64,000 nucleotides of DNA from Zygnema circumcarinatum SAG 698-1b (lineage: Eukaryota > Plantae > Zygnematophyceae), in NCBI GenBank assembly GCA_037447605.1, contig CM074822.1:1697492-1761491 (forward strand). The letters run 5' to 3'. Positions within the stretch are counted from its first letter, which is position 1. Each line of letters begins with the position of its first letter. The translations under genes and the position numbers were made by a program. The notes beneath the pieces are model-generated. The model had not been told where the DNA came from and searched no databases. It saw only the letters and a program-made list of their open reading frames with translations. This document shows, in pieces, positions 97 to 58,975 of this stretch.

Positions 97-3598
<3,502 letters not shown>

Positions 3599-5544: not shown

Positions 5545-10056
<4,512 letters not shown>

Positions 10057-10411
10057 ATAAAGTTCACAAATTCGAGATTTCTTTTTTATTTTTTAACATT
10101 ATCAAGATGGTTTGTTTCGTTTCATGATTTTTTTCGTCTAAACACCCTAACAACCCTAACCCCCCCCCGCCCCCTCCACGTGGCGGCTCATCATTGGCTG
10201 CCGCGTGTCTCGCTGGCAGGCAATAAAGCGTTACACTGTAATTCTGTTTCTTTTTTGGCGCTGGAAAACTCGGGGTCTCTTGACTTTAAAGAGGTTTGGA
10301 AGAAAGTGTGACTTTATAGACGTTACATTAAGAAGGGTTGACTTTAGAGAGGATCCACCTGGAATAGTTGACTTTAGAGAGGTTCCATGAAGACGAGGAA
10401 GCTGTAGGGAC

Positions 10412-10782
10412 TAGGGATGGATTAGTTACGATTATATATTATATATTATATTATACAACTGTGACGAATAGATAACGACTGATATATATTAATTTACAAC
10501 GCCTTTACAACATGTACGGTCGTACGGTCGTACGACTGTACGGTATTACGGTATTTTGCGGCCCGAGCACGAGCAGACAGAAAAAACCAACGCATTTCGC
10601 AACGCCAACGCCAAAACGACCTAATTTTGGTATGGTACGACCGTACGACCGTATCATTAATTGTTCAAAACGAGTGGGTATAATATATGTAATAAAGTGT
10701 TTTACTTTGTAATATATTACTAATTTTAAACCCGTTGTAAATTATATAATATATTCGGAATTTATAACGTAGGCCATCCCTA
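10412..10782. mobile_element. hAT-type MITE
   Basis: TIRs TAGGGATGG / CCATCCCTA. Perfect 8-bp TSD GTAGGGAC at 10404-10411 and 10783-10790. Internal inverted CGTACGGTCGTACG / CGTACGACCGTACG subterminal motifs. Confidence 0.85.
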
Positions 10783-10959
10783 GTAGGGACTCCTTCCATT
10801 AACAAAAAATGACTTTATAGGGCGGCGCAGGGTTTAGGGCTTAGGAAGTTCTGGCGAGTTCCAGCGGGTCTTTATGCTGTGTAGTTCCGTTAAGCGTCGC
10901 AAACCCTCTCCATGTGTTTGCTTGTACGTCCTCCAAATGAACAACAACGCTGTTCCTTT

Positions 10960-12095
10960 CACCCCCACTCACTCTCCCACTCTCTCCCCCTAACACTCTC
11001 TCCCACACTCGCTCCCCCCTCTCTTTCTATCCCACTCGCTCTCCCACTCGCTCTCCCCCTCTCTCTATCCCACTCTCCCTCTCTCCTTCTCTCTCTCCCT
11101 CTTCCTCTCCCCCTCTCTCTCCCTCTCCCTCTCTCCCTCACTCTCTCCTCTCTCGATTGCAGCCTCTTTTTCTACCCATCTCTCCCTCCCACTCCCCCCC
11201 TCTCAATTCCCCCTCTCTCCCCACCTCCCGTCTCTATCCCACTCTCTGTCCCTCTCTCCCTCACTCTTCCTCCCTCTCGCCCCCTCTCTATCTCTCTCTC
11301 GCTCCGCCCACTCTCCCGCTCTCTCCTCACTCGCTCCCCCCCCTCTCTCTCTCCCTCTCTCGCTCCCGCCTCTCTTTCTATCCCACTATCTCTCCCCCTC
11401 TCTTTCTATCCCACTCTCCCCCTCTCTCGCTCCCCCCTCTCTTTCTATCCCACTCCCCTCTCTCCCTCTCTCTCTCCCTCTCTCCCTCTCTCTCTCCCTC
11501 TCTCCCTCACTGTCTCACCTTCTCTCTCGATCCCACTCTCTTTCTCCCCATCTTTCCCTCCCTCTCCCCCCCTCTCTCTTCCCCCTCTCTCCCCACCTCC
11601 CCTCTCTATCCCACTCTCTGTCACTCTCTCCCTCTCTCGCTCCCCCATCTCTTTCTATCCCACTCTCCTTCTCCCCCTCCCCTCTCTCCCTCTCTCTCCC
11701 TCTCTCCCTCACTCTGACTCCCGTTTCTCTCTCCCCCTCCCTCGCTCCCCCCTCTTTTTATCCCACTCTCCCTCTCTCTCTCCCTCTCCCTCTCCCCCTC
11801 TCTCTCTCCCTCTCTCTCCCTCTCTCTCGATCCCACTCTCTCTTTCTCCCCATCTCTCCCTCCCTCCCCCCCCTCTCTCCCCACCTCCCCTCTCTATCCC
11901 ACTCTCTGTCCCTCTCTACCTCTCTCTTCCTCCCTTTCTAACCCTCTCTCGCTCCGCTCTCTCCCCCTCTCTCCTCTCTCCTCACTCACTCGCTCCCCCA
12001 CTCTCTCTCCCTCTCTGCCTCTCTCTCCCGCTCTCGCTCCCCCCTCTCTTTCTATCCCTCTCTCCCTCTTCCTCCCTCTCTCCCTCTCTCTCTAA
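10960..12095. repeat. Degenerate CT-rich minisatellite (recurrent CTTTCTATCCCACTCTCCC) running into an assembly gap
   Basis: Low-complexity pyrimidine array ending at the N run. Confidence 0.85.
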
Positions 12096-12105
12096 NNNNN
12101 NNNNN
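12096..12105. other. Assembly gap (10 N)
   Basis: Run of n characters. True distance across the gap is unknown. Confidence 1.
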
Positions 12106-14229
12106 CCTCAAAAAAATAACTTTTTTTGTCAGATAGCGCTCCGTGAATCCAGAACGATATCCCACAAGACCCGGTTGACCCCAGATCCACTGTAGCGCAA
12201 AATCCGGATTCCCCGCCGGACCCGCCGGATCCACGCGTTGAAGTCGCAGGTCCAAAAAAGGTCGATACCGCACCGCCCGCCCAGCTGGCCGCCTCGCAAA
12301 ACGCCAAAAAATGGCCGCCAATTCTGTCGTTTAGCTCTGCCAATTTTGGGCGGCAGGGACTGTCTTAAGTGCAGATTCTGGATTTGGCGCGCCTCAGAAC
12401 AATGTAATTATCCAATCATGGACTACCACGTGGACTCAAACAGCTGTTAGTGACACCTGGCAAGGAGATTTTGGACACCTGGCGATCTATCGTGGTTCGT
12501 ACGAGTAATCAATGATCAGATTCGCTACGAGCCGAGTATGCCTGTCGGCGCTTGTCCTTTTATGGAAAGGAAATTTGTACGGTTCCCCGGTCGGGCCCAA
12601 TTATCTCGTAGCGTACATTAATTTGTAAATACGTGGCAAATGGTGATTGGCGCAGATAAATAATCAAATTTCAAATCAAGAATTCAGGTTATTAAATAGC
12701 CCTGCCACGTGTTTGAGCCGTACAGATGCAATGTCGCGGTTGGAAGTAATTTCGGAGACTAAAGGCCTAAACTTGCCAGCACTATTTTGTCGTCACACGC
12801 GGTCTCTATTTCAATTTTGTCTGACGTGTACTGCAGGACAAGCCTGCCAGTTCACACAGAGCCATTGCTGAGTCATAGAATCTCATAGACGATCGTTCGG
12901 CTGTGGATCCCGAATCCGTAAAAATGGAATCAGCCTTGAAGATTCCAATCTGCCAATCTTTAGTCAACCAAAAGATGCCACGTAGGTTCTGTGGCTTACG
13001 TGGCGTGACATAATTGAAGATTTCAGACGGGAAAAGTTCAACCAGTCTTGCTCTCATAAGTGGCCTCCAGTTGGGGTCTTTCAAATTCGTACAGTCCAGC
13101 TGATTCGACACGTCAGCACGATCTAAATCGAATCCGATTGCGCGCGCATCAAATAGGACCGGCTGCGTTTGTCCTCTATGGCGTGCGATTGTGTACGAAA
13201 AAAGGTGTCGTTTTCGACACCTTTGTCAGCATTCGCCTTGGTCCTACATCCTGTTCGGCACAAACCGGAGGCGTCATTATCTGTTGGTACAGAAATCGTC
13301 TATTGTCCGTACATGCATTTCGTCGTTTTATGCGAAAAAAATTGTCAATTTGCCGTTCCATGGCCATCTACCGTTTCGTTTCTTCCTTGTCGAAAGTGAC
13401 CCTTCAACTCCACCGACCGTCGAAATGGTTTCCAATGGAAATCCGTCACGTGTAACTTTTCTTCACGTGGCACTCTCCCATTCGTTGCTCGCTCAAAAAA
13501 ACCAGGTTTTTCCGCCAAAAACGAAAGCCGGTTTGTCCCCTCCAATCGCACCAAACCCGGTTGGCTCTTAGGAACGAATCCCACCCTCCCTACCACTCAC
13601 ATCCGTCCGATCTGCCACGTGGTGACCATCCGACGGCTCTCCTACCAACTGGCCCTTTGGCGCGCCCTCCACCGACACTCCCTTGCCCGCCCAATCGGCT
13701 TCCCCTCGTTTTCCTCTGCCACGTGGCACCAATTGGCTACCACATACCTCCACGTGTCACCAATTGGCTTCTCCCGTTTCACCACGTCACCCTCCGCGCC
13801 TCCTCGCCCGCGTCCTTGCCCTTTGGAGCGCGCCAACGACTCACACATGTGAGTCCCCCCGCCAGCCAATCAGCGCGCTTCTTTTCTCCCTCTGCCGCAA
13901 ATCGGGCCCTGTCCGTACATTTCTCCGGAAATTGTGGCGCTAATGACAGGCGGAAGCGCTCCGTCCGTACATTACGCACTGTCTCCGTACTCTGCCGTAC
14001 GTTCGTACGGCCGCCGCCGCCGTCAGTCGCGCCGACGGCAACCGCCCGCCCTCACTTCCTACAAATCCTCCTCCCAAACATTAAGCCCTTATTCCCTCCC
14101 TCCCTCTCTCTCGCCCTCTCCCTCATCCTCTCCCTCTCCCTCTCCCTTTCCCCCGGACCCTCTCCCTCTCTCTCTCTCCCTCTCCCTCTCCCTCTCCCTC
14201 TCCCTCTCCCTCCCCCTCAAAATTAAACA

Positions 14230-15081
14230 ATGGAGGGGCGTGCGAGGCCCACATCCCTCTCCCTCCCTCTCCCCCGCCCCCTCTCCCTCCTCTCCCTCTC
14301 TCTCTCCCTCTCCCTCCTCCTCCCCTCCGCCCTCGCCTACATCAAAGTCGCCACTCCCGACCAGAACTGGGACACAGCCCCCTACCGCGGCGCCAAGCTC
14401 GGCCGCAACCGTTGGTACAAGGGCAGTGCCACGTGGTACGATTTCAGTGGCGGATCCCCTGGAGCGTGCGGCTATCCCTGGTCCGTTGTGAACTCGATCG
14501 ACTTCGCGGCCACCCCTGATCCACGCTGGCAGACCTCCCTCACGCGCCACGTGGCCAATTGGGGCGGCATGGCCTGCGGGCAATGCTACGAGGTGAAGTG
14601 TTTGGCTGTGCCGCGATACGGCCGGAGGGTCTACTGCAATAGAGGGAACCCCTCTGTCATTGTGCAGATAACGGATTACGATGTGCCCGGAACCAGGCCC
14701 GGCGGGAAGTCATGGCCCAACAACCACTTCGATCTGAAGCCGAGCGCTTTTGCTAAGATAGCGGACAAAGCGGCGGGGGAGATCAACCTCATGTGGAAGA
14801 GGGTCCCCTGCGACATGAGGAGGACATGCAAGTGGATGCTATGGCATGACTCGAACGACTTTTGGCACAACATGGTCATCTACAACATTCCGGGAGTTGG
14901 GGCGATGACCAATTTGTATGTGCGGCCGGCGGGGCACAAGAAGTGGATGAAGCCGAAGAGGTCGTGGGGGGTGCATTGGGACGTGCTCGGGTTCATGAAG
15001 TTGGATCGGAGTACGGAGGTCTATGCACGGCTCGCGGAGGGGAAGAAACAGGTCAAGTGTGAGTATTCTCCGACGACGTAA
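14230..15081 (+). CDS. Expansin (DPBB + CBM63 domains, secreted); final ~20 aa / last exon unresolved
   Basis: Signal-peptide-like N-terminus. Motifs ATWY, GACGY, GMACGQCYEVKC, VIVQITD, NHFDL, AGEINLMWKRVPC and WGVHW. Candidate donors at about 15053 and 15060 are followed by a long purine tract. Confidence 0.88.
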   Translation: MEGRARPTSLSLPLPRPLSLLSLSLSLSLLLPSALAYIKVATPDQNWDTAPYRGAKLGRNRWYKGSATWYDFSGGSPGACGYPWSVVNSIDFAATPDPRWQTSLTRHVANWGGMACGQCYEVKCLAVPRYGRRVYCNRGNPSVIVQITDYDVPGTRPGGKSWPNNHFDLKPSAFAKIADKAAGEINLMWKRVPCDMRRTCKWMLWHDSNDFWHNMVIYNIPGVGAMTNLYVRPAGHKKWMKPKRSWGVHWDVLGFMKLDRSTEVYARLAEGKKQVKCEYSPTT

Positions 15082-17042
15082 GGGGAGGGAGAGAGAGGGT
15101 GGGAGGGGAGGGGGGGGTGAGTGAGTGTGGGAGAGGGGAGGAGAGAGAGGGGAAGGGAGAAGAGTGGAGAGAGAGGGAGTGGGAGGGAGGAAAAGAGAGG
15201 GGGAGAGGGGGAGAGGGAGAGAGGAGGGGGAGGGAGGAGGAGAGTGGGGAGAGAGGAAGTGGGAGGGGAGAAAAGAGAAAGGGGGAGAGACGAGAGAGAG
15301 GTAGAGGGAGAGAGGAGAGAGAGGGAGAGGGAGGAGGAGAGTAGAGTGAGAGGGAGTGGGAGGGCGGAAAAGAGAGGGAGAGGGAGAGAGGAGAGTGAGA
15401 GGGAGAGAGGCGAGAAAGAGAGGAGAGAGAGGGACTGGGAGAGGCGAGAGAGTGGGAAAGAGAGGGAGGTGAGAGAGAAGGAGAAGTGGGAGAGTGGGGC
15501 TGTGGGACACAATGTGGGTCAGAATTGGGGGGGGAGAAAATTTGGAGAGGGCGAAGTTAGATTCTTTGGTCATCTGTTTCAGAGAATAAGGTTAATAAGG
15601 GAGAAAGAAGCTTGAGGGCAAATTTGTTCTTTAGATTTTATTTTTAATTCCCTGAGAGAAGCTGGGAGCGAGGATGGAGGGAGGGGGAGGGAGGGAGGGA
15701 GGGTTCGTTTTCTTCACTCTGAATAGTCGGGTATAATTGGCTTTTTGTTGAGATCGTTCGACTTTTATGTTCATTTAGAACTTCTTAAGCCAGAAATGTG
15801 GTTGATTCTGATATAGGCTTGACAGGCTTGCTCAGGCTGAGTCTAGCTCTGTGTGGTCCCCAGTTCAGTTTTTTGTTACCCTGAACTGAGCAGTACTGAT
15901 AGGCGCAGATAGACGGTAGCTCAATTCATTTTTTGGGGCCCAAAGCATTTGGAAATAAGGCTGGGGAGGTTCTGAGTTCGATCTTCAGTTAGGTAAATGT
16001 ACTTTAAAGGGATTAAAAAAGTAGAAATTGGGTATTGATTATTTTGGCAATGGAGAACTGCATGTATTTTTAAGATAGGAGCAAGCTCTCCTGTAATTTG
16101 TTGAAAGCTTCATTTTACCAAAATAGAGGAGTGACAAGCATTGGTCTTTTTCTGGCATCTTATTGTTGATTCTGCTTTTATTTTTTTTTCTCTCTTGAAA
16201 ATAATGCAATGATGGCTTTCTGTTACATGGGAAAAGAGTAAACAAAATAAAGGCTTGAATTTTTTTCTAAGCTTAAACCCTAAAACCCTAAAGAGTCTGT
16301 AAATGTGGCACCCTCCAATAGAATCTTGCCAAGTGGCGCTCTCCTAAACTGTCCTCCTTCAGATATTGGCCGGAGGAAATTGGAGAGTTTTTTCTCAGAT
16401 CTCAATTCGATTCTCTCCACTCCTCACTCTCACGCGGCAGGCCCTTTCGTCCCCTCTCCCTCTTAACGGGTCTGTCTCCCTCTTAACGGGTCTGTCTCCC
16501 TCCCTCTCTCGCTCAGGCCCCTCCCTCACTCCCCCTCTCAAGCTCGCCCTCTCCCTCTCTCTCTCTCTTGTGCTACTTCTGTCTCCTCCCTCACTCCTGC
16601 ACGTGGCATCCCGTCCCTCCCCTCTCCCACTCTCGCGGCAGCCTATCTCTCACTTTCTTCCTCTTCCTCTCGTGCCCTCTTCCTCTCTTGCACGGTGTAT
16701 CCCTCAACCTCCCTCTCTCTCTCTAACGGCAGCCCTTCTCTGCCCCCACCCTCCCAGGCCATTTCTCACTCCCTCTCTCTCCCTCTCCCACTCGCTCTCC
16801 TTCACTCCCTTTCGGTTTCTCCTCCACCCACACTCTCATACACAACTCTCTCTCCCCCCTCTCTCTCTCACTGAGAAAACATTTTCACGGCTGCAACCTA
16901 CGTTCTTCACCTTGTTAAGTTTACGACAATCTGGAGCCATTGTAATCCTCCTCTAAGATCAGAACGTTTTGATGAGGCACAAATCATGCGGCTTTGGTAT
17001 GGTTAGCGAACCGCTGGCATTGGTTCAAGCCTTTGATGCCAG

Positions 17043-17225
17043 TGCTTGCCAACCGTTGGTATTGGTCCAATGGTTGCCAGCCGTTGGTATTGATGCAATG
17101 CCTGCCAACCGTTGGTACTTGTCCAAAACTTGCAACCATCTTCATTTTTCGTCCAAACCACTTGCCATTAGATACCGACAGGGGGTATTTGTCCAATGAT
17201 TGCCAACTGTTGGAATTGGTTCAAA
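17043..17225. repeat. ~28-bp tandem repeat with palindromic core CCAACCGTTGG
   Basis: Three adjacent units at 17043-17128 plus a further unit near 17198. Probably a transposon subterminal relic. Confidence 0.7.
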
Positions 17226-17695
17226 CATTAGTTGCCAATGTTTGCCAACCTTTGGCTTGGTGGACCAAGAACAGTGCAAATATTCGCAACCATTCACCAC
17301 TGGCAGACAACCAAACCAAGACAGTAGGACCATTATTGCCTTACAAGCATGCCGAGCAGGGTGGGAAGAGAGAAGGAGAAGAAGTGTTGAAGGGTGGGAA
17401 AAGAGAGTGGGAGAAAGCATCTCAATACTACCATCACTTTACGAAAACGAAAGAATTAAACGATACTTTCTTATAAAAAAAGACAGCATGTACCACTATT
17501 TATCAATTAACTTGAAGTTGAGTTTCAAGCACCGTCAAGGGGTTCGACTAGTATACAATTGTAAGTCCTAATAGTAGCTGTTCACATCATTCTCCCTAGA
17601 ATCAGCTTTATGTACATTTCTAGCTTTTGACGACCATAGAAACACCCTCCTCCTATGTTCCGCAATAAGCATTCGGAGCCTACCTCCCTTCTGAC

Positions 17696-20172: not shown

Positions 20173-20851
20173 GCTGAACACAATACCAAACCCTAGAAAG
20201 ACAGAAATTCTTTCTCTCGCTTTCAGAGAGTGCACGGATATGACACTTCTGTTCTATATGCACCCGCTTATCAGCGGCTGCAAGCTTCACGGCAAATGCT
20301 GAACTCAAATACCAACCCTAAGAATGCTAAAAGGCTATTTTCCCCCCTACAAAAAGGTAAGAACGTTATTACGGCAATACGCGTCTATTCATTACTTATC
20401 AGAGGCCGAAAGCTTTTCAGCAAACACTGAACTTCAAACCAAACCCTAAAAATGCAAAAAAAATCCTTCCTCTCGCCAATAAAAGCACAAAAAGAGTACG
20501 CCTCTATTCTACATACACCGCTTATCAGCGCCTGAAATATTCACAGCAAGCTGCTACATCAGTTTGAATGCCGAACCACTTCTACAAGTGCTTCTCCTTT
20601 GAGAAAGCTCCTGCTTCCCTCCCTTCAAGAAGTGAACAGTTACAGGATGCTAGGACTAAGGAGCCTTCTTGGAGCGGCCCAACCGTCGGTCAACCGCCGG
20701 AACGGACAGGACGGATTACCGCGTATCGACAACTCCACAAAAGGAACAGCAGCCAATGAAAATGTGCCACGTTTGGACACGTTTCATTCTGTGAGTGGTC
20801 CAATTTGTAGAAAATTGTTATCCTCGATGGAGCCCCACCCATCCTACCCAC

Positions 20852-21038
20852 AGAAGTAATTGTCTTGAAAAAGGCTATGTCATGTCATGTTGTTGTTGTC
20901 TTGTTGGGCCTAGAAGGAATTGTCTTGAAAAAGGTTATGTCATGTCATGTTGTTGTTGTCTTGTTGGGCCTAGAAGTAATTGTCTTGAAAAATGTTATGT
21001 CATATCATGTTGTTGTTGACTTGTTGGGCCTAGAAGTA
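20852..21038. repeat. 60-bp tandem repeat x3
   Basis: AGAAGTAATTGTCTTGAAAAAGG(C/T)TATGTCATGTCATGTTGTTGTTGTCTTGTTGGGCCT begins at 20852, 20912 and 20972. Confidence 0.9.
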
Positions 21039-21059
21039 CACAGTTGCTCTCATGGCTTT

Positions 21060-21290: not shown

Positions 21291-21510
21291 GTCAGGGACC
21301 CTCCTCCATTGTGAAACTATTCTTGGAAAGCATCTTCCAATGGCGCTTCGTCACGTGAGCACCTTTCACACTTGGCGTACGCGTTGGGGCGACAGTAGTT
21401 GAGGTGTCCCGGAAAATGTCACTGACATGAACGGCCGTCGCCGTCACGGTGCCGTCCGTTGGGGTTCGTTCCAGTCCATTGGGATTCTGGGAACTACAGT
21501 ACAGCAAACG

Positions 21511-21928
21511 CACACTTTCATTGAACTCGCGATGGCGAGGCCATCAAATTTACATGGATAAAGGCAAAATGTGGAACCACGAAGGACTGGTCACAAAGGA
21601 CCGAAACACAATAAAACGAAGCTAGGAGCGGAAAACTACGCCTAGGCACAACAACGCAGCCCTAGAAGCAGCCGCGAAGGTCACCGATGTGAGGCACGTC
21701 GCGAGGAGGGAGCGGCGGAAGTCCACCAACACGGTCACCAACAACTGCAGCACGCCGAAGTAGCGTAGAAGCGAGGCAACGCTGAAGGGCGACGGAAATA
21801 CGTTGTCGATAAAAGGTAGCCAAGATCGCCGGAGGAGGGCTTCCGGGGCCGTGCATCTCGAAAGAGCGATGGGCGCACTGGCGAAGGAAGGTATCCAAAC
21901 GGGTGTCGAGGCAGCCAAAAATCTCAAG
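21511..21928 (-). mobile_element. 5'-truncated CRE-like (RLE) non-LTR retrotransposon
   Basis: Minus strand reads DTFLRQCAHRSF..LATFYRQRISVALQRCLA..GGLPPL, then a 3' UTR ending GAGTTCAATGAAAGTGTG. Flanked by ~16-bp direct repeat TACAGTACAGC(C)AAACG at 21495-21510 and 21929-21945. Homologous to 45420-45860. Confidence 0.8.
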
Positions 21929-22766
21929 TACAGTACAGCCAAACGTCGTCCAATTTCACTAAAAACAAACTGGGAATCTATTTACACACCTTTTATGGAT
22001 ATATGCACAGCTTACTTCGCCGGTCACATTTTAGATTTTATATTTATCCAAAACGCTGTGCATCTAGCCGAAAGAAGGTGTGTGAATTAACTAAAACCTT
22101 TTACTTAAATCTCTAAAAACCCAATTTATATACGTGGCGCGTTCTCATTGGATATATGCTCGATAACAGTTGGCCCTAAAGAGGAGGGCCCTTTGCCTCT
22201 TTGCTTGCGTCGTCGCCAAACGTCATCCAATAACAATGTGCCATGTGTACATATTTGTACACGTGGCACGTTCCTATTGGATGAATGCTTGCAAAACTTT
22301 GGCCCTAAAGGAGGAGAGCCCTGCATCATTTTTTTGGTGACTGGTTGTTGCTTGAAAGCTTGATGCGGTCTGGAGGCGCTTTTTCCTGATCTTGATATCT
22401 CTTTTTCTCAGTCTTTCCGTTAGTATTTCTGCTTGGTAAGAGACTGCAGGAGTCATTTCCTGGTCATATATTTCCTTGCGGAAGTGCTGCTTTGAATGAG
22501 TCGTTGAACTATTCGCTGATCATCTTGCAAAAGCGCTGAACAAAGGCGAGCAAGGTGGGCGATCTGCAAGCAGAGCGGAAGATGGTTTTCGGTGAGTGCA
22601 GGATCATCGCGGTCAGGATCCCGCTGCAATAGTCCTGCTGCGTGTTGATCCAGGTGTATCAGGAAGGAAGGATGTGCTGCCGTTCGTCTGAAAAGGAAGC
22701 GCGCTCTAATGAAGAGTAATTGAAGTAACATTAGAAAGTTGTTCAATCTTCTGTGTTTCGCCTCCT

Positions 22767-22819
<53 letters not shown>

Positions 22820-29345: not shown

Positions 29346-31313
29346 ATGTCAATGTTGCTCCAGCCAGTTAGGAGCTACCGACCAGCCATCCGTTGGTAGA
29401 CCAACCATTGGCGTTGCCCCCCCCCCCCCCGGGCCGAGTGCCTGGCGATGGACCCGTTCGGCCGGGCCCTGAACGACGGACGGGGGCGAACGATATTTTT
29501 TGCATATCGTAATATTGACGGCATATCGGCTTTGAGGACAAAATCCTGCCGGCCTCGATTGTGTACGGAAGTTCCTCGCTGGTCGGTAGAGTGTCCACAT
29601 CCGGAACGCCGTCGATATGCCGAATATGCTGCCTGCGACTGTCCCGATATCGGAACGGCAAGCTGCCCGCCGGTCGTACAATTTCGTATAGATCGCTGAT
29701 CGGTGGCTCCTGATTGGCTGCATTGACGTCATCGTTGCCGGGGTTTTAGGGTCTCTGCGGTCCTTGCAAGGTCTTGAAGCTTAAAGGGTTCAGGTCTCTG
29801 AATTTCGACTCATTTTGTCGTTTTCTAACCGTACAGTCTACTACAGTACAGTACAGAACCAAATGTACTGCAGTAACTACTTTTCTGAGTTTCAACGAGC
29901 AATGATGATACCGTACGAATCCGGAGACTGCTCCGAATGTTCCATCATGACAGCCGGGAAGGTCCCGCCGACTTTATGTACGGGGTGAAGGAAAAGTCAA
30001 AGCTCTGTGCGGACTGGTAGGGAGGGCCGGCTGTACGGAATTTTAATTCGTTTCTTATTTAAAATTCGATTAGTTCTCGGTCATTTAAAAATAAAAGTCG
30101 AGCCAAAAACTTGGATAGCATCCTTTTTTTTCTTCTTAGAGAAAAAATTATACGGACGTGGCCGCCAGGCATTGGTCTCCAACCATTGGTACCAACCATT
30201 GTCGCCGGCCATTGGCCAGGATTCGAGCCACTGCACTGTGATTGGCAGACGAGACGTGAGGTGACACCACCCTAGTTTTTTTTTTCAGTTTTTTTAAAAC
30301 GGCTTACTTGAAATTTCCAAAATATTCTTTTTTATGTCTTCCCCAATGCTACCCCGTGCAAGACTCGCTCCGTAAGGACCGACATTCGCTCCGGCAATCA
30401 TCTGCCGCGCCGACAGGAAGTTCAAAAAACGACAAATTTGATGGGTAAAACGACAAATCTGGCTGTCGGTGAAACTGTGCAGGGCCGACGGTTGGTGACG
30501 GAAACGACAGATCCTTGTCGTGTATAAGTGTACGGCAGTCTAGCTTATCCGAGGGAGCAATTCTAAGTCGGCCCCTACACGACAAGTAAGTACGGTGGTA
30601 ATGTACTTCTGTACAGAAATCCGGGTACAAACTGTACGGCGCAGAAAACACAGCAACTTTTTTTTCAATAGTGTAATATTATTTTGTTCGCAGTATTACA
30701 CTGACCGTTTTTTATAATGTTTACACGGGCTGCTCACAAAATATTGTTAGCTTGACAGATCCCTCTCATTGGTTGCTTTCCAAATACGCCTCAACGAAAA
30801 AACTGAAACTAAGTTTGGTTTCAATTTTTTTCTCTGCCCAAAAAGTTGTCCTTCCAAAATTACGATCGTCAAATTCCGTCTGACGCTCCGGCCAAGCCCG
30901 ATGTACAAACGTACGGACGTGTCACCTGGGGAGTCGCCTGTCGTACGGACTTTGCCGTACAACCGTACTCATTAGCGGGTCCTGCCGACATATTTGTACA
31001 GTCCGCCTGAGCAGGCACCGGATCCGGTTCAATTGTGAACGGAATTTTTTCAAACAACGACAAATTCGATTTTCCCATTCACACTGGATCCGGATCCGAT
31101 AAGGGCCCTTTGTCCATTTCTTTAGTTCTATTGTCCAATGGAAAGATGCCACGTGGAAATTAATGTCCACGTGGCGCGTTCTAATTGGAAGTTTTCGAAA
31201 AGGTTGAGCCTTTAGAAAGGGACCCTTCCTTCCAACAAACCCTAATTTCGATCATGCTCTGTACTGCTTTTTGCTCTGAGGAAAAATTAGGGTTAGGAGG
31301 AGGAGGGCTCGCC

Positions 31314-37978: not shown

Positions 37979-38012
<34 letters not shown>

Positions 38013-40541
38013 AAGAGAGGAGCTGCTCTCTGCAGGTCGTTTTACACCTATAAGGCGTTCGGCTACTTCCTGCAAAGGTTGGTAGAGAGTTGGATACAAG
38101 TGAGAGAAGAATGATGAGCAAGAGAACTCATAAACCCGGATAAATAAAGCATGTGACGAAAGGTCACATCATTTCAATAGGAAAAGATATATCGTCTATA
38201 CCTTCATAGAAGCAAGGGCTTCTGAAGCACTGGCTGATGCATTCCGAACTGCAGGTGTTGACCCTACAAGGGCTCGAGCCCAGTTTCCAGTTAAACTGCT
38301 GGACAGTTTCTCTGCATCTCCACTCATCTGCCCTCCAACGGAATGGTCCGATTCCAACGGTATCGAAAAGCTTCTCCCTAATGTCTTCAGAAGTCGGGCT
38401 CTATCCAAACTGGCATTGTTTGGACTAACAGAAAGGTTTGTCTTATCTGCAATTCTTTGGCTGGATAACGATCCTGAAGTCGAAGAATCTGAGTGTGCTG
38501 AAGCTTGGCTACCAAGTCGGGCAGCCGAAAGTTTTTCCAGAACGAGGGCAGGCGGAGCACGGGGAGGCAGGGCAGGGGAAGAAAATTCGTTGGCCCTTAC
38601 AGATGATGTGGTTTGGGGGGGGGCTGGTCGAGGAGCCTTAATAGTTTGGGGACTGTTTTCAGAGGAAAGGAGGGAAGAGAGAGAGCTGAAAGCTTCTCTC
38701 GCTCGTTGAACGAATGCAGGGTCCTCAACCAACTGAAAACTCCAACACATGCACATACATAGCTCATGAGTAGAAAGGAGAACGACAACAAAATGGTTCT
38801 AATAGTTGATGAAAGTAGATGAGAGTACAGGAGTGATGGGATTCAGAGAGAATGTAAGAAAGAGAACAAGAGTCTCTCTCACTCTCTCTCTCTCCATCTC
38901 CCTCTGCCCCCTTCCCCCCTCTCCCTCCCCCTCTCCTTCTTCTCTCCCTCTCCCTTTCCCTCTCTTCTTTCCGTCCCCAATCAGCCTGGCAAGCACGAGA
39001 CATGAAAGAGTTTTTGAAGAAATACAACACAACTGCAGAGAGACAATGAAAAGTTTTTTTTGGCTCACCCGAGTGACGGAGCCAAGTTGTAAGACTCCTT
39101 GAGGGACTGCGATTACCGCGATTGTCTGTAAAAAGTTGAAAAATATGAAAGTATATAAGGAAATAATTTCGTTTCGTTGAATATCCAATGGAAAAGTAAT
39201 AGATAGGAAAGGAATAAGCTAAAGGTATAACTTGTAGGCTTTTGCTCACCTGAATTCCGGCATCAAATTGCTCCTTCCACCCAACTGGATACTGAGCAAC
39301 ACATGGAAATCGCACATGTAAAATGTTAGACTAAGTTTCACCGTTCTCTCCGACGAGGGTGCAATTAGATGGCCATGAAAGTCTTTAGGTGGTTAAGATT
39401 CTGGAACAATAAAAAAGCTATGGACTTCACGAACCCTAGAAAATAAAAGACAAAATAAGGGCATATGACTGCCTGAGATACTACTGAGATTTTTTATTTT
39501 TTTTCTCCAAAGACTATGACAAGGTTTACCTGGTCAGCCATGGAGTCAAGAACTGAAGAGGGAGTTTCTGGATTGATGTGGTCCCGCAGGACCCACCGAT
39601 GGTTGCCACGAAGGGCCACTTTGCCAATAAGCCTGCGGGAGAGAGAGAAGGGTGGTAGGGAAGGAGGGAGAGAGGAAGGGAGGGGAGGAGGGAGGGAGGA
39701 GGGAGGAGGGAGGAGGGAGGAGGGCGAGAGGAAGGGAGGGAGGAGGAGGGAGGAGGGAGGAGGAGGAGGGAGGAGGGAGGAGGGAGGAGGGAGGAGGGAG
39801 GAGGAGGAGGGAGGAGGGAGGGAGGAGGGAGGGAGGAGGGAGGAGGGAGAGGGAGGAGGGAGTGAGGGAGGAGGGAGGAGGAGGAGGGAGGAGGGAGGAG
39901 GGAGGGAGGAGGGAGGAGGAGGAGGGAGGAGGAGGAGGAGGAGGGAGGAGGGAGGAGGGAGGAGGGAGAGGAGGAGGAGGGAGGAGGGAGGAGGGAGGAG
40001 GAGGAGGAGGAGGGAGGAGGGAGGAGGGAAGAGGGAGGAGGGAGTGGGGGGGAGGGGGGGGAGAGGACAAGAGCGCAGAGAATAAAACGCGGAGGAAAGG
40101 GGAAGAAAACGGAGAGAAACAGGCGAAATACGGGAGAGCGGGCGGGAGAAAGAAAGAGAGGAATGGAGAAGGGAGCGAGGGGGAAGGACAAAAAGGAAAA
40201 ATAAAAAAACTCGTGAATACGAAAGTGAGGGATATGCCAGAGAGGGGAACCAAATAACTTAGTTCTCCCCTTATGGAAACGGGAGAACTAAGAACTTGAA
40301 ACATATGCAGAAAACAAACAAGAAAAACAAACGTGCAAGTGTTTTGTAAAGAAATCCTTGGAAAGTCAATAGCTTACCCTTCCCCATAGTTGTACAATTG
40401 GTACGACATTTTGGCATAGGCGGAGGGGAGGAGGACTTCGGCATCGAGCTGCTTTGAATCGACGGCTTCGGCGCCGCCCTGAGGGAGATACGAGCGGGAG
40501 GGAAGGACGCTGTAGCCGTCCTCCCACATGAGAACCCTGAC

Positions 40542-40573
<32 letters not shown>

Positions 40574-41758
40574 GTGGAAGGGAGGAGAGAGGAGGAGAAG
40601 GAAACGGAGAAGGAGAAGAGGAGAAGGAGGATGAGAAGGTGAAGGAGAAGGAGGAGAAGAAGGTGGAGATGGAGAAGAAGACAGAGCAAAAACGGAACAG
40701 GAAGAAGTAAAGAACACGTTAGCAAAAAAGGCAGTAAATGTAAGAAAATAAGACTTTTTTCGCAACAAATCAACTGAAAAGCTCAGACGTGCAAACCAGA
40801 ATTTGACCCGATGAGCTTTAGTTCTTCACAGCCTTCCGTAGACTGCATGTAACGCCGTTGACATGCATGGTGTCTTCGAACTCTACATTTTCCAGACACC
40901 AAACGGAAATACAGAATACACAACTCTGCGATTGAGGTTCCTTCGGCATACTGATTTTCCTTCCCCTGACGTTTTTGCAGTGAAGTTTTTTATTCTTAAC
41001 CCTCATCGCTAGGATAATATTGTGCTGAATGAATGTACAATCTCAAAGAAGAGCTTCCATCCGGTGGATCATCCATACCCACAGTCGGCTAGTTACATGC
41101 TGGCCTTCAAGACCCGACATTGTTTATTGTAGTTTTGTCACTGCAAGCTAAGCTTGAGCAGATCCCGCAGTTTACGTACCAGTTATTCTTCTCCTTCTCC
41201 TTGCTCGAACCACTTCCCGTCATTTCTCCTGCTTTCCCAGTCCTATAAAGAATACCAACACAACAGAACCTTTACTCTTTTGACCTAAACGACTCATAAG
41301 GGCTCAGCCTCCTCGCTCCCGCTCTCTCACACTATCGTCACCTCTATTGCTTTCTCACAGCTTCTCCCCCAACCCGTTCCCCTTTCTCCTCCAGACAGCC
41401 AGACTCGCATCCAAACACAGAGAGATAGGGAGAAGAATCCAGAAGCCGACAAACTTATAACCCGTGGTTGGCAGGCATCTGTCAATGCATGCAGATAGTG
41501 AGACCTTTGCTCCATAGCCACAAGCCCTAAACTGAGTCATTCAAAAAACTAAAACCCGATCTTCTAGATATAATACATGAAAGCAGAGAACCAAATGTCG
41601 CGTGGATGCAAAGAAGCTTACCGTTGGCGAACTTCCCGAGGGAAGGCCCTTGGACGAAGGCGCCAAAAGACAGTATAAGACCAGCCTGTGTTTCGACACA
41701 TAGCACATAGAGCTTCATGCAGGCGCTGGTGCCCTGCCTGCACCATCTGGCCATCCAT
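35376..41758 (-). CDS. bHLH-MYC_N domain protein (RSS3/LHW-like) lacking a visible bHLH, with long Q/G/S/N-rich tail, 1261 aa
   Basis: Exons 41758-41622, 41242-41180, 40536-40378, 39632-39530, 39291-39250, 39125-39069, 38732-38202 and 38069-35376 total 3786 nt in frame. Sequence: [92 protein letters not shown]. Confidence 0.9.
39639..40070. repeat. (GGA/GGGA)n purine tract (CT-rich on the transcript) in intron 3 of the MYC_N gene
   Basis: GGAGGGAGGA repeats for ~430 bp next to the acceptor at 39633. Confidence 0.9.
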
Positions 41759-44522
41759 GGCTGCTCAAACCTAAGGCCTTCTGGCTGGCAGGACGCTTCC
41801 TGCAGAGTTTCTAAGCCTGTGCGTATTGAGTCGAGCCCAGCCGTTTCATATCGATGAAAGCCGGCTCAATGTCCTAAGTCAGACTAGTAATTAGAATCCC
41901 TGCGGCAGAAGGTAGGACGGGTGTGTTTCAGGGGATCCATGTTTAAAAATGCAGGTTTCAGGACATGAGCACATGCAGACAGTTATATGCAGAAAGGAAG
42001 AGCATGAATGCAGGTGGATTAAGGAATGGCCTTGTGCTCTTGTATTGAGCTTCAGACCGCCTCTGGATGGAAGTTAGTTAATAGGTTAAAATCTATCATG
42101 AGGAGGTCTCCTTCCACAAACTCAGTTTTCCGTCAAAGGCGAGTACACAGGTATGTTTTTCGGGCAGTCTCTATCAGATTTTTCGAAGTTCTGTCCTGCA
42201 AGCAAATATTGCTTCCAGCAGCTAACAATCGACTCAAATAAGCTCTCTGAAAGGACAGGCCCACACAACCAACATTTCATAAACGCAGCGCTTTAGCTGC
42301 TGAGGCTTATCAAGGATTCTCTGAAATCGAGAGAGGGAGAGAGAGGGGCAGAGGGTTGGCAAGTCTATGAGACGTCTCGACTGACGCATACAACTGATAC
42401 ATGCCGTGTCAGACGCAGGTTATTGTAGAAAGGGAAAAAAAAGTTGGCAAGAGGTCTTAGCCAGGTATAGGAGACCGGCTGAATCTGTTAAGTGGTAATA
42501 TGTGAACAACAAAGTAGTTTTGGTTAACGGTAATCTCTTTAATGGCATGCAATTCCTACAGGTCCTGAAGCTCCTGCATTTCCTGACAATGTCTGGCATT
42601 CCCGGAACCTTCGTTCCACGATAACTGGCACGAGGATGAACGAAAACGGCATGTCAAAGCCTGCCTACCTTACAAAAAGACTCTGCATCCCTCCACAGCT
42701 GTACCCATGCTGCAGTTTCCGTCTCAGTTTTGAATGCCTGAACAACCGCATTAAACAGAAGGCCCTCAACACTCCTGCAGCCTTGCCCGCCATGGTCTCT
42801 CCTCCTTCATTGCAGAAAGAAGCCACTCCCTTAAAAACTTCCAAGAAGTCGCTATGGCTTCTCTACCTCTGTCGTTTTCAAAGCTCCTCTACCTCCCTCT
42901 CCCTCTCCCCCTCCTCGCCCCACTCCCTCCCTCTCTCTCCGCTTTCCTCCTTTCCCTCTGCTCCCCCTCCCTCTCCCTCTCCCTACTCCCTCTCCCTTTC
43001 CCTCTCCCTCCCCACTCACACCATTTACCCTAACCAGTTGGCCATGTACATTTGATGGCATCGCCATCGTCAGATCAGTGCCACATCCTTTGCCCTAATC
43101 GTACGGTCCCACAGATAAATTCCGTACCATCAGACGGTAGTAGGTGCTAGATTCGTACATTGTTCGTACAGTGTTCGTACAATGCTCGTGTAATAACCGT
43201 ACAACAATCGTACGTTGTTCGTACAATATCCGTAGAACAAAAAGAAGGCGTACTTATATCCGTACGGTCCCCTCGTGGTGTCTTTATCCACTGTGACCAC
43301 CATAGCCACACTCAGCCAATGGTAGATCGTCACGTGGACACAACGCCATGTGACGCATTTCTATTGGTGAGAATGGTCAAGAAAGTCTCAAATGCAAGAA
43401 GGCTCCTGGAAGGTTCGCCTCTTTCCGTACAGGTTCTGGTAGGTGTCCCTACTTGTAAGGGCCGCCTTTGCGGCCGGCGAATGCATGGCGGCAGCTCTGC
43501 CAGCTCAGCAGATCTGGAGGACGGCGGCCAATGGATGTCTGTCACGTAGGTGAAAGTGGTGGATTTAGTCGGCAACCGTGTTGGACTTTTCTGGGTTTGA
43601 ACTTCGAACCCTGCCGGCCGCTCGTTGACTTTTACAGTTGGATCAACTCTGGAATTTCGTGGATCGCATCGAGATCAACAACCCTGGATAGCCGCCTAGG
43701 GAATCGAATCACGATTCCATTTGGATCAAACCGTGGTTGCTCCTGCTGGGAAGGTCGGTGGATCCAGTTCAGATGGGCCAATGCAAGTGGGCGGCGAACG
43801 AGATATTCTAGGGACCATCATAAATTCAAAGGTGTGTTCCAATTCTGCGATTGGTTCATGTGTTCAACTGAATCAGCCATATCCACGTGGCTGAATCGGG
43901 GGCGCACATGGCTCCAGGACCAGCACTGGACCGTACGGACGAACTGGCAGGACTGTTTCCATGAATTTTCACACCGTGTTTCGTATGCATCAATCCGTAT
44001 CCTTGTCTGCCGTACAATTTCCGTATCGTACCTACCGAGATCTCGAGGCTGAAAGGGTAGGTCCCGGTTCATATCGTAGGTCGGTGGATCGTACCGTACG
44101 GCCTACTCAACCGTATCCGTTGGAGGTGAAAGGTTTCACAGTTCGGACCAGTGGATCGGCAACCATTGGACAACCATTGGATGGCAATGGTTGGACGTCT
44201 ACTGGTTTGTCTAATGGTCCGATCTGTGAAAGGTTTAGGTTGTCGGCCTGTCGGTGCCACCGCCTCGATGGTCGGATGGTTTTTTCATGTGTTAGTTGAT
44301 GGGACTTCGTACTTGTTTGTACAGTTTTGTCTCTGTTACAGTATACTGTACCTTAAGGGAATTGTTTTTCCGTACATAGTTCATACGGCCTATGCAACTG
44401 TACGGGTGTGTGATATCGTATCGTATCGTATCTCTTGGGATGCAAATACGATACAGTATGTATGCGATGTTAAATGTACGGTACGGTATTCAGATACGTA
44501 TCCTATTGTCCTCGTGTTGTGA

Positions 44523-45910
44523 GTCGACGACGCAATGTAGCTCAAGCGATCGCAATGGCAGCTACCGCGTTTTTGGGTAGTTGGGCTCTCGTTGCTCCTA
44601 TTTCGGCTTTGCGTTTTCTTGTGGACGAGTGTCCGTTGCTTCAGTCTGTTGCTGCCCATGTTGATGATGGTGCTCTTTCGTTCCAGGCTACATTGCGTTA
44701 TGCCCTTAGTTTGCTTCCTTCTAGTGCTAAGGCCCGTGCTCCCCCGTTCGCTTCAATTGCCGTTGAGTCTGTCTCGCGTGTCCAGCTCACATTGACTGAG
44801 GATGTAGTTGCTGCTGAGTTCTCTCCCCTTATTGCGGCTCTCCCTTCAAATGTTGCATGCTAGGCTCCGCTCTTGTGCTGGTCTTGGAGCCCGGGCTTGG
44901 TTGGCTGTTACCCCGACATTTTCCACCCTTCCTTTTGACCCCGAGCCAGTTTCAGCTTGTAGCGCGACTTTGTCTCGGGCTCCCCCACCCCCCATTGCAG
45001 GGTTTTCTTTGTTGTGTTTGTGGTGATTCGGTCGATGTGCAGGGCGTTCATCTCCTTCCATGCGCGCACGGTGGCGAAAGCATATTGGCTCATAATGTTG
45101 TGCGCGATGCGATTGTTGTGGTGGCACAAGAGGTCGGCTTTCTTGTGTGATGCGAGCCGAGCCACATTGTGCCCCCTCGACTAACTGTTCTTGGCGAGCT
45201 TGGAGTTCGCCCTGATTTGGCTATCATGGATGGTGCTCAGCGCATTTTTGAGGATGTTACGTTGGCCGATCAACACATTGCGATTTATCGTCGCGTTCAG
45301 CGCAGTTTTAGTTAATTCTTTACGTGAATCAAAAGTTCAATGCAGAAATACTTTTTCTCCATCCTCCGCAAGTAGCGCACATATGCCCATTTTGATGCGG
45401 CCGACGAGTTTGTTCCTATGGCTGTTGCGATCTTTTGTTGCCTTGACGCCTGTTTGGATGGCTCCTTCCCTTCGCCAGTGCTTACGTGCGCCCATCGCTC
45501 CTTGGAGATGCGCGCACGGCCCCGGAAGGAAGCCCTCCTCCCCTCCTTCGGCAATCCTCGCCACTTTTAATCCACAAAGCATTTTCGTCGCCCTTCAACG
45601 GTGCCCTCCTCGCTTTTACGCTTCTTCGGCGTGAAGCCATGGTTGTTAATGACCGTGTCGGTGGCCTTCCGCCGCTCTCTCCCTCCCTCCGTGCAATGTG
45701 CCGCACATCGGTGACCTTGGCGACCTTGGCGGCTGCTTCGAGGGAGGGCTGCGTTGTTGAGCCTAGGCGTACCTTTCAGCTCCTAACTTTTTTCTTTGTC
45801 CTTAGGTCCTTTTGCGACCAATTCTACGTGGTTCCCCATGATGATTTTGTCCATGTACGCATCATGAGATCAACGCACATCACTTCTTCAATGACAATGG
45901 CTTCCGTAGT
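44523..45910 (+). mobile_element. Decayed 3' portion of a CRE-clade (restriction-like endonuclease) LINE
   Basis: Frameshifted ORF remnants: AFLGSWALVAP, ARLRSCAGLGARAWL, LCLGLPHP, Zn knuckle CVCG..VHLLPC..HNVVRDAI, RLE motif RPDL..EDVTLAD, FVPMAV and ..SIFVALQR. Possible TSD GTGTTGTGA at 44514-44522 and 45911-45919. Confidence 0.85.
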
Positions 45911-45961
45911 GTGTTGTGACATATACGGTTATGTGTTGTGAATGAGAGAGGGATGTAGCTT

Positions 45962-46060
45962 GATTTCACGATGGCGATGATGGCATCAAATGTACATGGA
46001 AAAAATCATCATGGGGAACCACGAGGAACTGGTCGACAAAGACCTAAGGACAAGAGTAAA
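45962..46060 (-). mobile_element. Short CRE-like LINE 3' UTR fragment, inverted relative to its neighbour
   Basis: GTACATGGAAAAAATCATCATGGGGAACCACGAGGAACTGGTCGACAAAGACCTAAGGACAA is the reverse complement of the 45795-45860 3' UTR type. Confidence 0.7.
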
Positions 46061-46163: not shown

Positions 46164-46211
<48 letters not shown>

Positions 46212-47701: not shown

Positions 47702-47748
47702 TGACGTCACGGAATTGTGACGTCACATAATTCTGCCTCGTGACGTCA
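47702..47748. promoter_or_regulatory. Cluster of three perfect C-box/CRE palindromes TGACGTCA
   Basis: TGACGTCA at 47702, 47718 and 47741, plus TAACGTCA at 47752. Confidence 0.5.
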
Positions 47749-49533: not shown

Positions 49534-49978
49534 ATAATATGCTGTGGAAAAACGCAGAATGTCTTCTGGTAGTGAGCCTATTTTGAAGCTTCAAACAAGG
49601 CGAGGGAAAGGGAAGTAGAGCTTAGAAGGATAGGGCTCGTGTTAGGGTTCTTCCAAGAACGAAAGCAGAACTAAAAAGAAAGAATTTTAGGTGAAATCTT
49701 GGCTGGACTTTGAAATGGGTTTGGAAGTTTTAGCAATGGAGTGTAGGATGAAAGTGGTTTCAATTGAGCATGGGAGAAGAGGCTATGGCGGTTGCATGCT
49801 TACCGAGAGAGATGCCTTGCAGAGCTGCAGGTGTAGAAACATGCCATGCAATGGTATTTGAAGATTTTCGCTTTGAGTTGTACTACAGAGAGATAACTAA
49901 CTCCCAGTGAATGTTGAAAAGATCCCTAAAAAGGAAGTAACAAAAAAAAAAAAAACCCTTGTTTGGAAAAATCGTTAC

Positions 49979-57130: not shown

Positions 57131-58147
57131 GGACTTGAGAAAGGAAATGAAGGAAAGGAAGGAAATGTGGATAGGTGACGACGCTGAGAAGCAGCAGCAA
57201 TGGGGTATCATTGTTTGGGGGAATAAGGCTTTTGCGGTTGTTCGAATGAGAGATATGGAAGGGAGTAGGGTAAGAACCAGTATCAGTAGCCGAGTCAGAA
57301 TCATCTGACTGGTTAGCAGCTTGGCGTCTGGTTTCATCAAGACAAAATTTTAGCTATAGAAGAGTGTGTTGTAGTCCATTTTGGGTCTAGTCTGTTTGTG
57401 GGGACTAAGTCATTGGATCCGGTGAGTTTCAAAACTTCTCCTGAAACGAAGTAGAAGTAGCTTCATGGAGGTGTACCATCAAAGAAGTGAATGGCTGAAG
57501 AGGTAGCTGTCATCTCCTTGTGAGAAGTGGCAGCATACGGGATATTGATAGCTTGAAAGGACTTAGTAATAGATCTCCAGGATCTATTGCAAGTATATGA
57601 TTTCCATGTACTCCTGAAGTTATAGTTCTGTAAACGGGATAATATATGAGGCTTATTCTCAGTTCCTTTTCCTGTTTGTCTATGCCCCTTTTTCTAACCT
57701 TAGGGCTTAAGCTGATGATAAACCGATATAGGCCCCGTTAAACGCTTCTGTTCCCAACTCCCAAACTCCAACTCCAACTCCAACTTCAATCCCAAGTAAC
57801 TTATAAGCTCAACTCCGACGGAAGTGCAGACCGCTGCTGAAGCAGCAGGGTGAGCAGTAAGTACAACTTGAATTGACCTAAAATCAAAAGATTTTCGTTC
57901 GAGATGATAGGATTATCTTTCACACAACGATACCCACTTTCCCGCCTCAGCTCAAGAAGACACAAATAGCGGGATTCTGGGTCCCTTTGGATCCCTTTTG
58001 GGTCATTTGGGCCCTAAGAAATGCTCAGGACTACGTTCGCATAGCTTCAGCTTCAGATCATGTTGCGCTCCATTCCATGCCTCTTGCTGCTTCTCTTATA
58101 GATGTGAAATGCATAATTTTTTTTTAATCACAATATATCAGTTAAGT

Positions 58148-58302
58148 AGTAACTCGGTAGTTTTCCGCTCCTAGCTTCGTTTTATTGTGTTTCGGTCCTT
58201 TGTGACCAGTCCTTCGTGGTTCCACATTTTGCCTTTATCCATGTAAATTTGATGGCCTCGCCATCGCGAGTTCAATGAAAAGTTCAATGAAAGTTTGCGG
58301 TG
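58148..58302 (+). mobile_element. Extremely 5'-truncated, young CRE-like LINE copy (~155 bp)
   Basis: About 120 bp nearly identical to the reverse complement of 21517-21639. Ends with duplicated GTTCAATGAAA. Flanked by 10-bp direct repeat TCAGTTAAGT at 58138-58147 and 58303-58312. Confidence 0.8.
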
Positions 58303-58321
58303 TCAGTTAAGTGGAAAATGG

Positions 58322-58410
58322 CATTGAACTCACGATGGCGAGGCCATCAAATGTACATGGACAAAAGCAGCATGGGGAACCACGAGGAACTGGTCGCAGA
58401 TGACCTAACA
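58322..58410 (-). mobile_element. Second CRE-like LINE 3' end, inverted, adjacent to the previous copy
   Basis: CATTGAACTCACGATGGCGAGGCCATCAAATGTACATGG..CATGGGGAACCACGAGGAACTGGTCG, same subtype as 45962-46060. Confidence 0.75.
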
Positions 58411-58539
58411 ACAACAATCTTTTTCCATGCTTGGTTTTAGCACGGCACAGCATGGCATGGCATGGCATCGCACATGGTGAATTTCATGGAAGGTAAAAGC
58501 AATCCACGGAATTTGCCACTAGCCAGTCGGCAGCGTTTC

Positions 58540-58975
58540 CATCTGACGTGGCTGGCGGCGATTGGGTCGTGCCTTACAAGAAAAAAAAGTACAGTACGTA
58601 TGAAGCGTACGATTGGCCAATATCCATGATCATCTGCATGGATCTGCATGGCGGTGTTCACGCGCCGGCGATCTTTCTCTGGACTGTTGGCGTGGGGCCA
58701 CTTGACGTGGGGACCCATGCATCCCCCCGTTTTGCGGCGCACGTTACCTAAGGATCTCACGCGTGCGCAAAGAGATCATGCGTGCAAGAACGAGTAGAAC
58801 ATGCAAATTGTCAAAAACGAGAGAGATTTTAACCTTACAAGTGGCGCATAAAGTGGCATTAACACACGCACCATGCTGACGTTTCTGTCCATGCTTGAAG
58901 CAATGAAGCAGACTCGTTGATTTCAGCCGCAATTGATTTCCGCCGTCCGCTTGGGCCCCTCACAGCACTATAAGA
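58540..58975 (+). promoter_or_regulatory. Cupin gene promoter with ABRE, CE3-like, RY cores and TATA-like box
   Basis: ACGTGGC at 58546. RY cores TGCATG 58635, TGCATG 58645, CATGCA 58716, CATGCA 58800. CACGCGTG at 58758. TATAAG at 58969. Confidence 0.55.

Follow-up and report, generated by a model that had tools for sequence, protein, structure and literature searches.

CCAAT-N10-CACG, a rigidly spaced composite element in the intergenic DNA of Zygnema circumcarinatum: a candidate NF-Y/bZIP promoter module

Introduction

A stretch of 64,000 nucleotides from the alga Zygnema circumcarinatum SAG 698-1b (Zygnematophyceae; assembly GCA_037447605.1, contig CM074822.1, positions 1,697,492 to 1,761,491 of the forward strand), hereafter called the window, contains 14 exact matches to the composite sequence CCAAT-N10-CACG, against 0.21 expected from dinucleotide-preserving shuffles. 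In each of them a CCAAT box is followed on the same strand, exactly 10 nt downstream, by an ACGT-containing word, an arrangement known from the ER (endoplasmic reticulum) stress element (ERSE) of animals and land plants. On balance, the sites appear to be selected protein-binding cis-elements of ERSE geometry, in which a composite of NF-Y and an ACGT-binding bZIP factor would serve as a general promoter module. The element does not look like a dedicated switch of the unfolded-protein response (UPR).

Number, spacing and composition of the sites

The 14 matches had been listed in a preliminary description of the window, and all of their coordinates and strands were reproduced. Among 100 dinucleotide-preserving shuffles, the highest count reached was 2. 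Taking both strands, the window contains 161 CCAAT and 291 CACG words, which corresponds to a naive expectation of ~0.37 matches and therefore to a Poisson probability of ~1e-17 for 14 of them. When the spacing x of CCAAT-Nx-CACG was varied from 0 to 30, the 14 matches occurred at x=10 whereas all other spacings gave 0-2, with the sole exception of x=28 (four matches), where the second G-box of the mirror-image pairs described below is counted. The preliminary description had looked to a genome-wide excess at x=10 over the neighbouring spacings, and within the window this excess is present. No spike occurs for the reverse order CACG-Nx-CCAAT (0-3 matches at every x, 0 at x=7-8), nor do the two arrangements with an inverted CCAAT box display a spike of their own in the spacing scan, since the counts for CACG-N12-ATTGG (eight matches) and CACG-N30-ATTGG (five matches) result from the same sites read via the palindromic CACGTG, plus the mirror pairs. 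Sites with one mismatch obey the same rule, with 10 at x=10 versus 2-6 (mean ~3) at other spacings, the excess consisting of the partners that face exact sites at 13465(-), 22227(+) and 43348(-). The intergenic frequency of the CCAAT-N10-CACGT element is ~40-70 times that expected by chance, and its density of ~1 site per 4.6 kb of the window corresponds to roughly one or more copies per gene.

The exact sites and the double units to which some of them belong are listed below, the double units, which have no single strand, being given without one.

10179-10197, minus strand: single exact site, ~126 bp past the stop of the last GT43 open reading frame (ORF)
12412-12430, plus strand: single exact site, the sole one with A for G before YCACGT; two further CCAAT boxes within 100 bp upstream
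12597-12650: decayed double unit of 54 bp; the exact site 12632(-) forms its right half, and the left one has kept CCAAT and lost its ACGT core
12998-13017, minus strand: one-mismatch site (TCAAT) with the same spacing, within the same intergenic cluster
13432-13484: mirror-image double unit of 53 bp; the exact site 13432(+) faces a partner that has CGAAT, 13465(-); located upstream of the ATG of the expansin (14230), at 746 bp
20753-20771, plus strand: single exact site, with a second ACGT (GGACACGT) 6 bp further on
21337-21355, plus strand: single exact site, 160 bp from and outside an arm resembling a miniature inverted-repeat transposable element (MITE)
22133-22151, minus strand: exact site that duplicates the right half of 22227-22280 in tandem, with a 129-bp period; directly followed by TATATAAAT
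22227-22280: mirror-image double unit of 54 bp; the exact site 22262(-) faces a partner that has CATGT, 22227(+); located upstream of the ATG of UBP6 (~23043), at ~763 bp
30157-30175, minus strand: single exact site; TATAAT follows 5 bp downstream, and the 70 bp upstream contain three more CCAAT boxes
31135-31188: mirror-image double unit of 54 bp, both halves exact (31135+, 31170-)
43316-43367: mirror-image double unit of 52 bp; the exact site 43316(+) faces a partner that has CACAT, 43348(-)
43528-43546, plus strand: single exact site, 161 bp to the right of the 43316 unit
58547-58565, minus strand: single exact site of the CCACGTCA type, lying 838 bp upstream of the cupin gene region's first ATG ORF (59385); 130 bp from and outside a MITE-like element

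An assembly gap (12096-12105) at the end of a CT-rich low-complexity tract is spanned by no site or double unit, the nearest site being 307 bp away, and it affects only the distance from 10179 to 12412.

Besides the boxes and their distance, only a few positions are constrained. In all 14 exact sites CACG is followed by T and preceded by a pyrimidine (C in 10, T in four), and this YCACGT is itself preceded by G except for the A at 12412, so that both extensions reported in the preliminary description, to YCACGT in every copy and to G before it in 13 of 14, hold as stated. The half-site close to CCAAT, G-Y-CAC-GT, is accordingly fixed while the distal half is relaxed, the base after CACGT being G in eight sites, A in three, C in two and T in one. 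A full CACGTG is thus found at eight of the 14 sites, and the final G of an E-box (CANNTG) is wanting at six. The exact form CCAAT-N9-CCACG is represented by 10 sites, ACGTGGC is read on the reverse strand at 10 sites, and the CCACGTC word that resembles the unfolded-protein-response element (UPRE) occurs at two. Weak preferences mark the beginning of the spacer, with C or G at the first position after CCAAT in 12 sites and A or G at the second in 13, and the remainder of the spacer varies among the sites.

Mirror-image double units

The description of the individual copies was borne out, but it had overlooked that many of them are paired. Five exact sites are halves of four units of 52-54 bp (13432-13484, 22227-22280, 31135-31188 and 43316-43367) built on the plan CCAAT-N10-CACGTG-N12-CACGTG-N10-ATTGG, so that the two G-boxes, separated by 12 nt, are enclosed by the CCAAT boxes. 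A fifth unit (12597-12650) is decayed, and retains both CCAAT boxes over 54 bp after the loss of one ACGT core; the other eight exact sites are single. The outer frame CCAAT-N44-ATTGG is matched three times versus 0.1 expected, and a partner half with at most one mismatch accompanies five of the 14 exact sites, for a null probability of 0.0016 per position. The units are not alike, and self-complementarity outside of the fixed boxes is limited to 10-24 of 30-32 positions. The spacers of the two halves are therefore only partly symmetric, as is suited to paired protein sites and not to hairpin repeats.

Independence from dispersed repeats

The absence of a common copied repeat, proposed in the preliminary description, was supported by the pairwise alignment of 200 nt of flanking DNA on each side for all pairs of exact sites. 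Only the flanks of 22133 and 22262 could be aligned (score 71 on both sides, versus a null maximum of 17), and this pair corresponds to a local tandem duplication with a 129-bp period. All other pairs scored at the null level over these 200 nt, and therefore no transposon family is involved here. The spacers of 31170(-) and 22133(-) are identical at nine of 10 positions despite their unrelated flanks.

A MITE-like family with long inverted, facing arms does occur in the window, as two copies (58157-58417 and 45745-46056) and a solo arm (21516-21663). Complementarity between the segments 21516-21639 and 58157-58280 is 100% over 124 nt, suggesting that the element moved recently. The family lies 130-180 bp from the sites 21337 and 58547, and it was rejected as a carrier of the sites since the alignment places both of them outside. 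Thus, despite the proximity of these elements to two sites, the single tandem duplication and the 9/10 spacer identity of 31170 and 22133, it is most improbable that the sites are inert and were left behind by a motif-bearing dispersed repeat or small transposon, because the flanks of every other pair are unalignable, the spacers differ, what is kept consists of the functional boxes and their distance alone, and the MITE-like family of the window does not contain the sites.

Other repeats of the region include a 60-bp tandem repeat in three copies (94-97% identical; 20852-21036), located between the sites 20753 and 21337.

Genes and position of the sites

Genes were mapped by Pfam searches on single ORFs, the exons being searched one by one; a codon-usage exon finder trained on long ORFs was dropped, as coiled-coil and low-complexity bias dominated its results. 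The following genes and exons were retained.

3014-3595, plus strand: GT4 exon (Pfam)
6681-7016 and 9703-10053, plus strand: GT43 exons (Pfam)
14230-15081, plus strand: expansin (Pfam)
ATG ~23043, plus strand: UBP6, start with a ubiquitin-like (Ubl) domain (Pfam)
31185-34142, plus strand: TSSC4-like ORF of about 940 aa (weak Pfam match)
60780-61082, plus strand: Cupin_1 (Pfam)
62600-63998, minus strand: DGAT2, DAGAT (Pfam)

None of the 14 sites lies inside a gene span, introns included, although the spans that could be bounded occupy ~53% of the window; the chance of such an outcome is 0.47^14, i.e., ~2e-5, or ~1e-3 when nine loci are counted in place of 14 sites. The two short tail-to-tail intergenic gaps also contain no sites. 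The earlier statement that no copy falls in coding sequence stands for the Pfam-supported exons and the three long ORFs, none of which is overlapped by a site. It is less firm for the ORFs without a Pfam family that do overlap sites (13060-13452, 13104-13568, 13400-13849, 43151-43546, 43133-43360 and 10067-10285), any of which may be an orphan coding sequence. The orientation of the sites is independent of the direction of the genes. The 31185-34142 ORF has its first two in-frame ATGs at 31254 and 31314, and the double unit 31135-31188 precedes them by 66 and 126 bp, respectively, with a telo-box (AAACCCTAA) at 31237 between the unit and these ATGs. A TATA-like box directly follows three of the 14 sites, at no consistent position, and among 1339 tests of hexamer enrichment in the 120-nt flanks only extra ACGT/G-box words survive.

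The preliminary description had also held that the neighbouring genes do not form a UPR set. This was confirmed with respect to GT43, expansin, the Ubl domain of UBP6, the weak TSSC4-like match, Cupin_1 and DGAT2, but two of its labels, SYP5 and MYC_N, were not recovered, neither giving a Pfam match on any ORF tried. A 942-aa ORF had no relatives in a word search of a protein collection that also returned no match of the ORF to itself and thus does not include the proteins of this genome.

With regard to the sequence landscape, CT/GA-rich low-complexity tracts (2640-2960, 5700-8360, 10912-12095, 15080-15460 and 39640-40630) give rise to spurious ORFs of 300-430 aa. A period-8 array (8385-8770) of the form (CCCTAAAA)n, a telomere-like repeat of the TTTTAGGG type, is interstitial and lies within the span of the GT43 gene; a 33-bp tandem repeat occurs at 8893-9148.

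Proteins proposed to bind the element

NF-Y, the histone-fold trimer, is the most likely protein on the CCAAT box, and an ACGT-binding bZIP the most likely one on the half G-box G-Y-CACGT, on the same strand and one helical turn (10 nt) downstream; the binding of this bZIP to the half-site would be aided by NF-Y. In the vicinity of genes that are unrelated and mostly do not encode chaperones, the resulting module would act as a general building block of proximal promoters, and its symmetric pair would suit promoters firing in either or both directions. The preference of NF-Y for C or G and then A or G after CCAAT (JASPAR NF-Y matrix) is matched by the first two spacer bases of the sites, which favours NF-Y as the CCAAT-binding partner. 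A general role of this kind is consistent with the ability of NF-Y to keep promoters free of nucleosomes and to set the choice of the start site (PMC6624317).

Several observations weigh against such a role. The units 13432 and 22227 and the site 58547 are separated by 746, ~763 and 838 bp, respectively, from the nearest recognizable ATG, and unless the 5' untranslated regions are long, 750-840 bp is a great distance for a proximal element. Several sites have no identifiable adjoining gene, the site 10179 is situated just downstream of a stop codon (~126 bp), and no consistent TATA box or other co-motif was detected around the 14 sites. Moreover, bHLH proteins also bind G-boxes, and GT43, expansin, cupin and DGAT2 are all neighbours related to the secretory pathway, which leaves room for a stress or secretory regulon.

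The association of NF-Y with a G-box-binding bHLH protein (USF-, PIF- or MYC-like), as a counterpart of the human CCAAT/E-box module, is an unlikely reading of the sites. The full CACGTG at eight of the 14 sites would accommodate it, fixed CCAAT/E-box distances involving USF1/2 and MAX are well documented in human promoters and in LTR12 (PMC4889920, PMC3730095), and a rice NF-YB/YC-bHLH complex is known to bind the G-box (PMC6576074). However, the E-box of the human module is located on the 5' side of CCAAT, at -12/-11 from its first C (PMC3730095), whereas the ACGT core of the present sites is on the 3' side and the 5'-side arrangement has no spike. The CANNTG that bHLH proteins need is present at the eight sites with a full E-box, but the remaining six lack the final G, while the half-site proximal to CCAAT is invariant. 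This invariance, together with the occurrence of G after CACGT in only eight of the 14 sites, probably makes an NF-Y-assisted bZIP on a half-site the better fit.

A true ERSE regulon, induced by ER stress through NF-Y and a factor of the bZIP28, bZIP60 or ATF6 type, with neighbouring genes that encode secretory clients or machinery, is quite unlikely. It would agree with the exact CCAAT-N9-CCACG at 10 of the 14 sites, with the UPRE-like words, and with neighbours such as the Golgi GT43, the secreted expansin, the cupin-type storage-like protein and the ER enzyme DGAT2. A strict dependence on spacing, as in ERSE, is also apparent in the enrichment at x=10 alone of both exact and one-mismatch sites. 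On the other side, the density is about one site per 4.6 kb, or roughly one or more per gene, UBP6 and the TSSC4-like gene also adjoin sites, and no ER chaperone gene was found in the window, the gene models of which are incomplete. None of the verified neighbours corresponds to an ER chaperone or ER quality-control promoter, ERSE-II is absent from the window, UPRE shows no enrichment there, and the majority of the sites are full G-boxes (CCACGTGG), not CCACGTCA.

It is improbable that a lineage-specific factor or complex other than NF-Y reads the whole bipartite 20-nt site, maybe as a dimer on the mirror pair. Such a factor could account for the rigid spacing, the weak spacer consensus (G at spacer position 9 in 13 of the 14 sites) and the exact dyad geometry, but each half is a canonical site for factors that are universal in eukaryotes, the bases flanking CCAAT fit NF-Y, and the same geometry is bound by NF-Y and bZIP proteins in animals and plants.

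Occurrence in other algae and in metagenomes

The expansin of the window has its best relatives in two proteins from transcriptomes, at 53-54% identity, and in proteins of Closterium, at 40-41%, which points to a streptophyte alga, probably close to the Zygnematophyceae, as the source of the window. In ~42 kb of unique DNA from two Closterium expansin neighbourhoods, a small sample with one gene called per locus, there were no matches at x=10 versus about nine expected at the density of the window, which is better accounted for by a lineage-specific expansion than by an ancestral grammar. The view that ERSE became specialized from an older grammar of this lineage, as put forward in the preliminary description, is therefore not supported by this small sample.

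A scan of metagenome contigs of the Joint Genome Institute (JGI) for the double unit returned 61 loci, of which 59 (L004-L064 except L015 and L058; contigs Ga0315913-5, Ga0228710-1 and others) belong to a single dispersed repeat family, ~0.8 kb in length, of an unrelated organism with AT-rich DNA (GC 32%). The copies of this family are near-identical and without similarity to the window; their 53-54-bp unit (CCAATGACAARGTGACACGTGT...ACACGTGTCACYTTGTCATTGG) forms an almost perfect palindrome and is frequently repeated in tandem at 110-122 bp. As a true copied repeat, the family matches by coincidence and is therefore uninformative about the conservation of the element. A palindromic hairpin repeat of this type was rejected for the Zygnema units, which are dissimilar and of the self-complementarity given above, as compared with 44 of 53 positions in the metagenome family. 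Another, environmental contig (L015; ERZ1034375 NODE-20543, 1.8 kb, GC 42%) carries, within 150 bp (1359-1502), three CCAAT-N10-CACGT sites whose spacers are unrelated, including a 53-bp mirror-image double unit, and may derive from another organism with the same grammar.

It is tentatively proposed, as a possibility that falls somewhat short of being probable, that the alga uses this NF-Y/bZIP composite of ERSE geometry genome-wide to organize its promoters, with about one copy or more for each gene and often in the form of a 54-bp mirror-image dyad, and that the ERSE of animals and land plants is one specialized use of the same protein geometry. If true, this would represent a promoter grammar of a rigid kind that has not been described in plants or algae, where rigid genome-wide promoter grammars are rare. 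In the literature consulted, the element is nowhere described as a promoter module of general use in streptophyte algae. Should NF-Y and bZIP proteins read the module, it would offer a simple sequence marker of promoters in a poorly annotated lineage near land plants and a natural system for the positioning by NF-Y of a partner one helical turn away, and the choice between ERSE as a specialized use of a broader geometry and a secondary expansion in the alga would become testable. The mirror-image unit is, in addition, a compact candidate part for bidirectional promoters in algal engineering.

Comparison with known composite elements

The mammalian ERSE, CCAAT-N9-CCACG, is bound by NF-Y together with ATF6 or XBP1, and plant ERSE-I (pERSE), CCAAT-N10-CACG, by bZIP28 with NF-YA4/B3/C2; once NF-Y is bound, CCACG alone is needed (PMC3645738). 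The assignment of the Zygnema element to this geometry in the preliminary description is upheld, since all 14 sites conform to the plant definition and 10 of them to the mammalian one. The likeness to the mammalian ERSE extends to the boxes, their strand order and spacing, and to a fixed CCAAT-proximal CCACG next to a relaxed distal half, but the present sites differ by their frequency (~1 per 4.6 kb), their non-chaperone neighbours, their mostly full G-boxes and their frequent 52-54-bp mirror pairs. The sequence definition of plant ERSE-I is identical; in Arabidopsis, however, it marks UPR genes, whereas the density and the neighbours of the Zygnema sites point to a general use.

To our knowledge, neither a rigid CCAAT-to-ACGT spacing nor a mirror-pair unit has been described for the modules that combine NF-Y with bZIPs of the abscisic acid (ABA) response element (ABRE)/G-box type in seed and ABA genes. 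They share with the Zygnema element the partner word ACGTGGC, carried here by the reverse strand of 10 sites, and they illustrate that NF-Y (LEC1/L1L-NF-YC) cooperates with ACGTGGC-binding bZIPs in plants outside the UPR (PMC3602376). Finally, the human NF-Y/USF-MAX module differs by an E-box on the 5' side of CCAAT, an arrangement that is unenriched in the window, and resembles the Zygnema element by the genome-wide pairing of CCAAT and CACGTG at fixed distances in ordinary promoters, which shows that a composite grammar based on NF-Y can be general.

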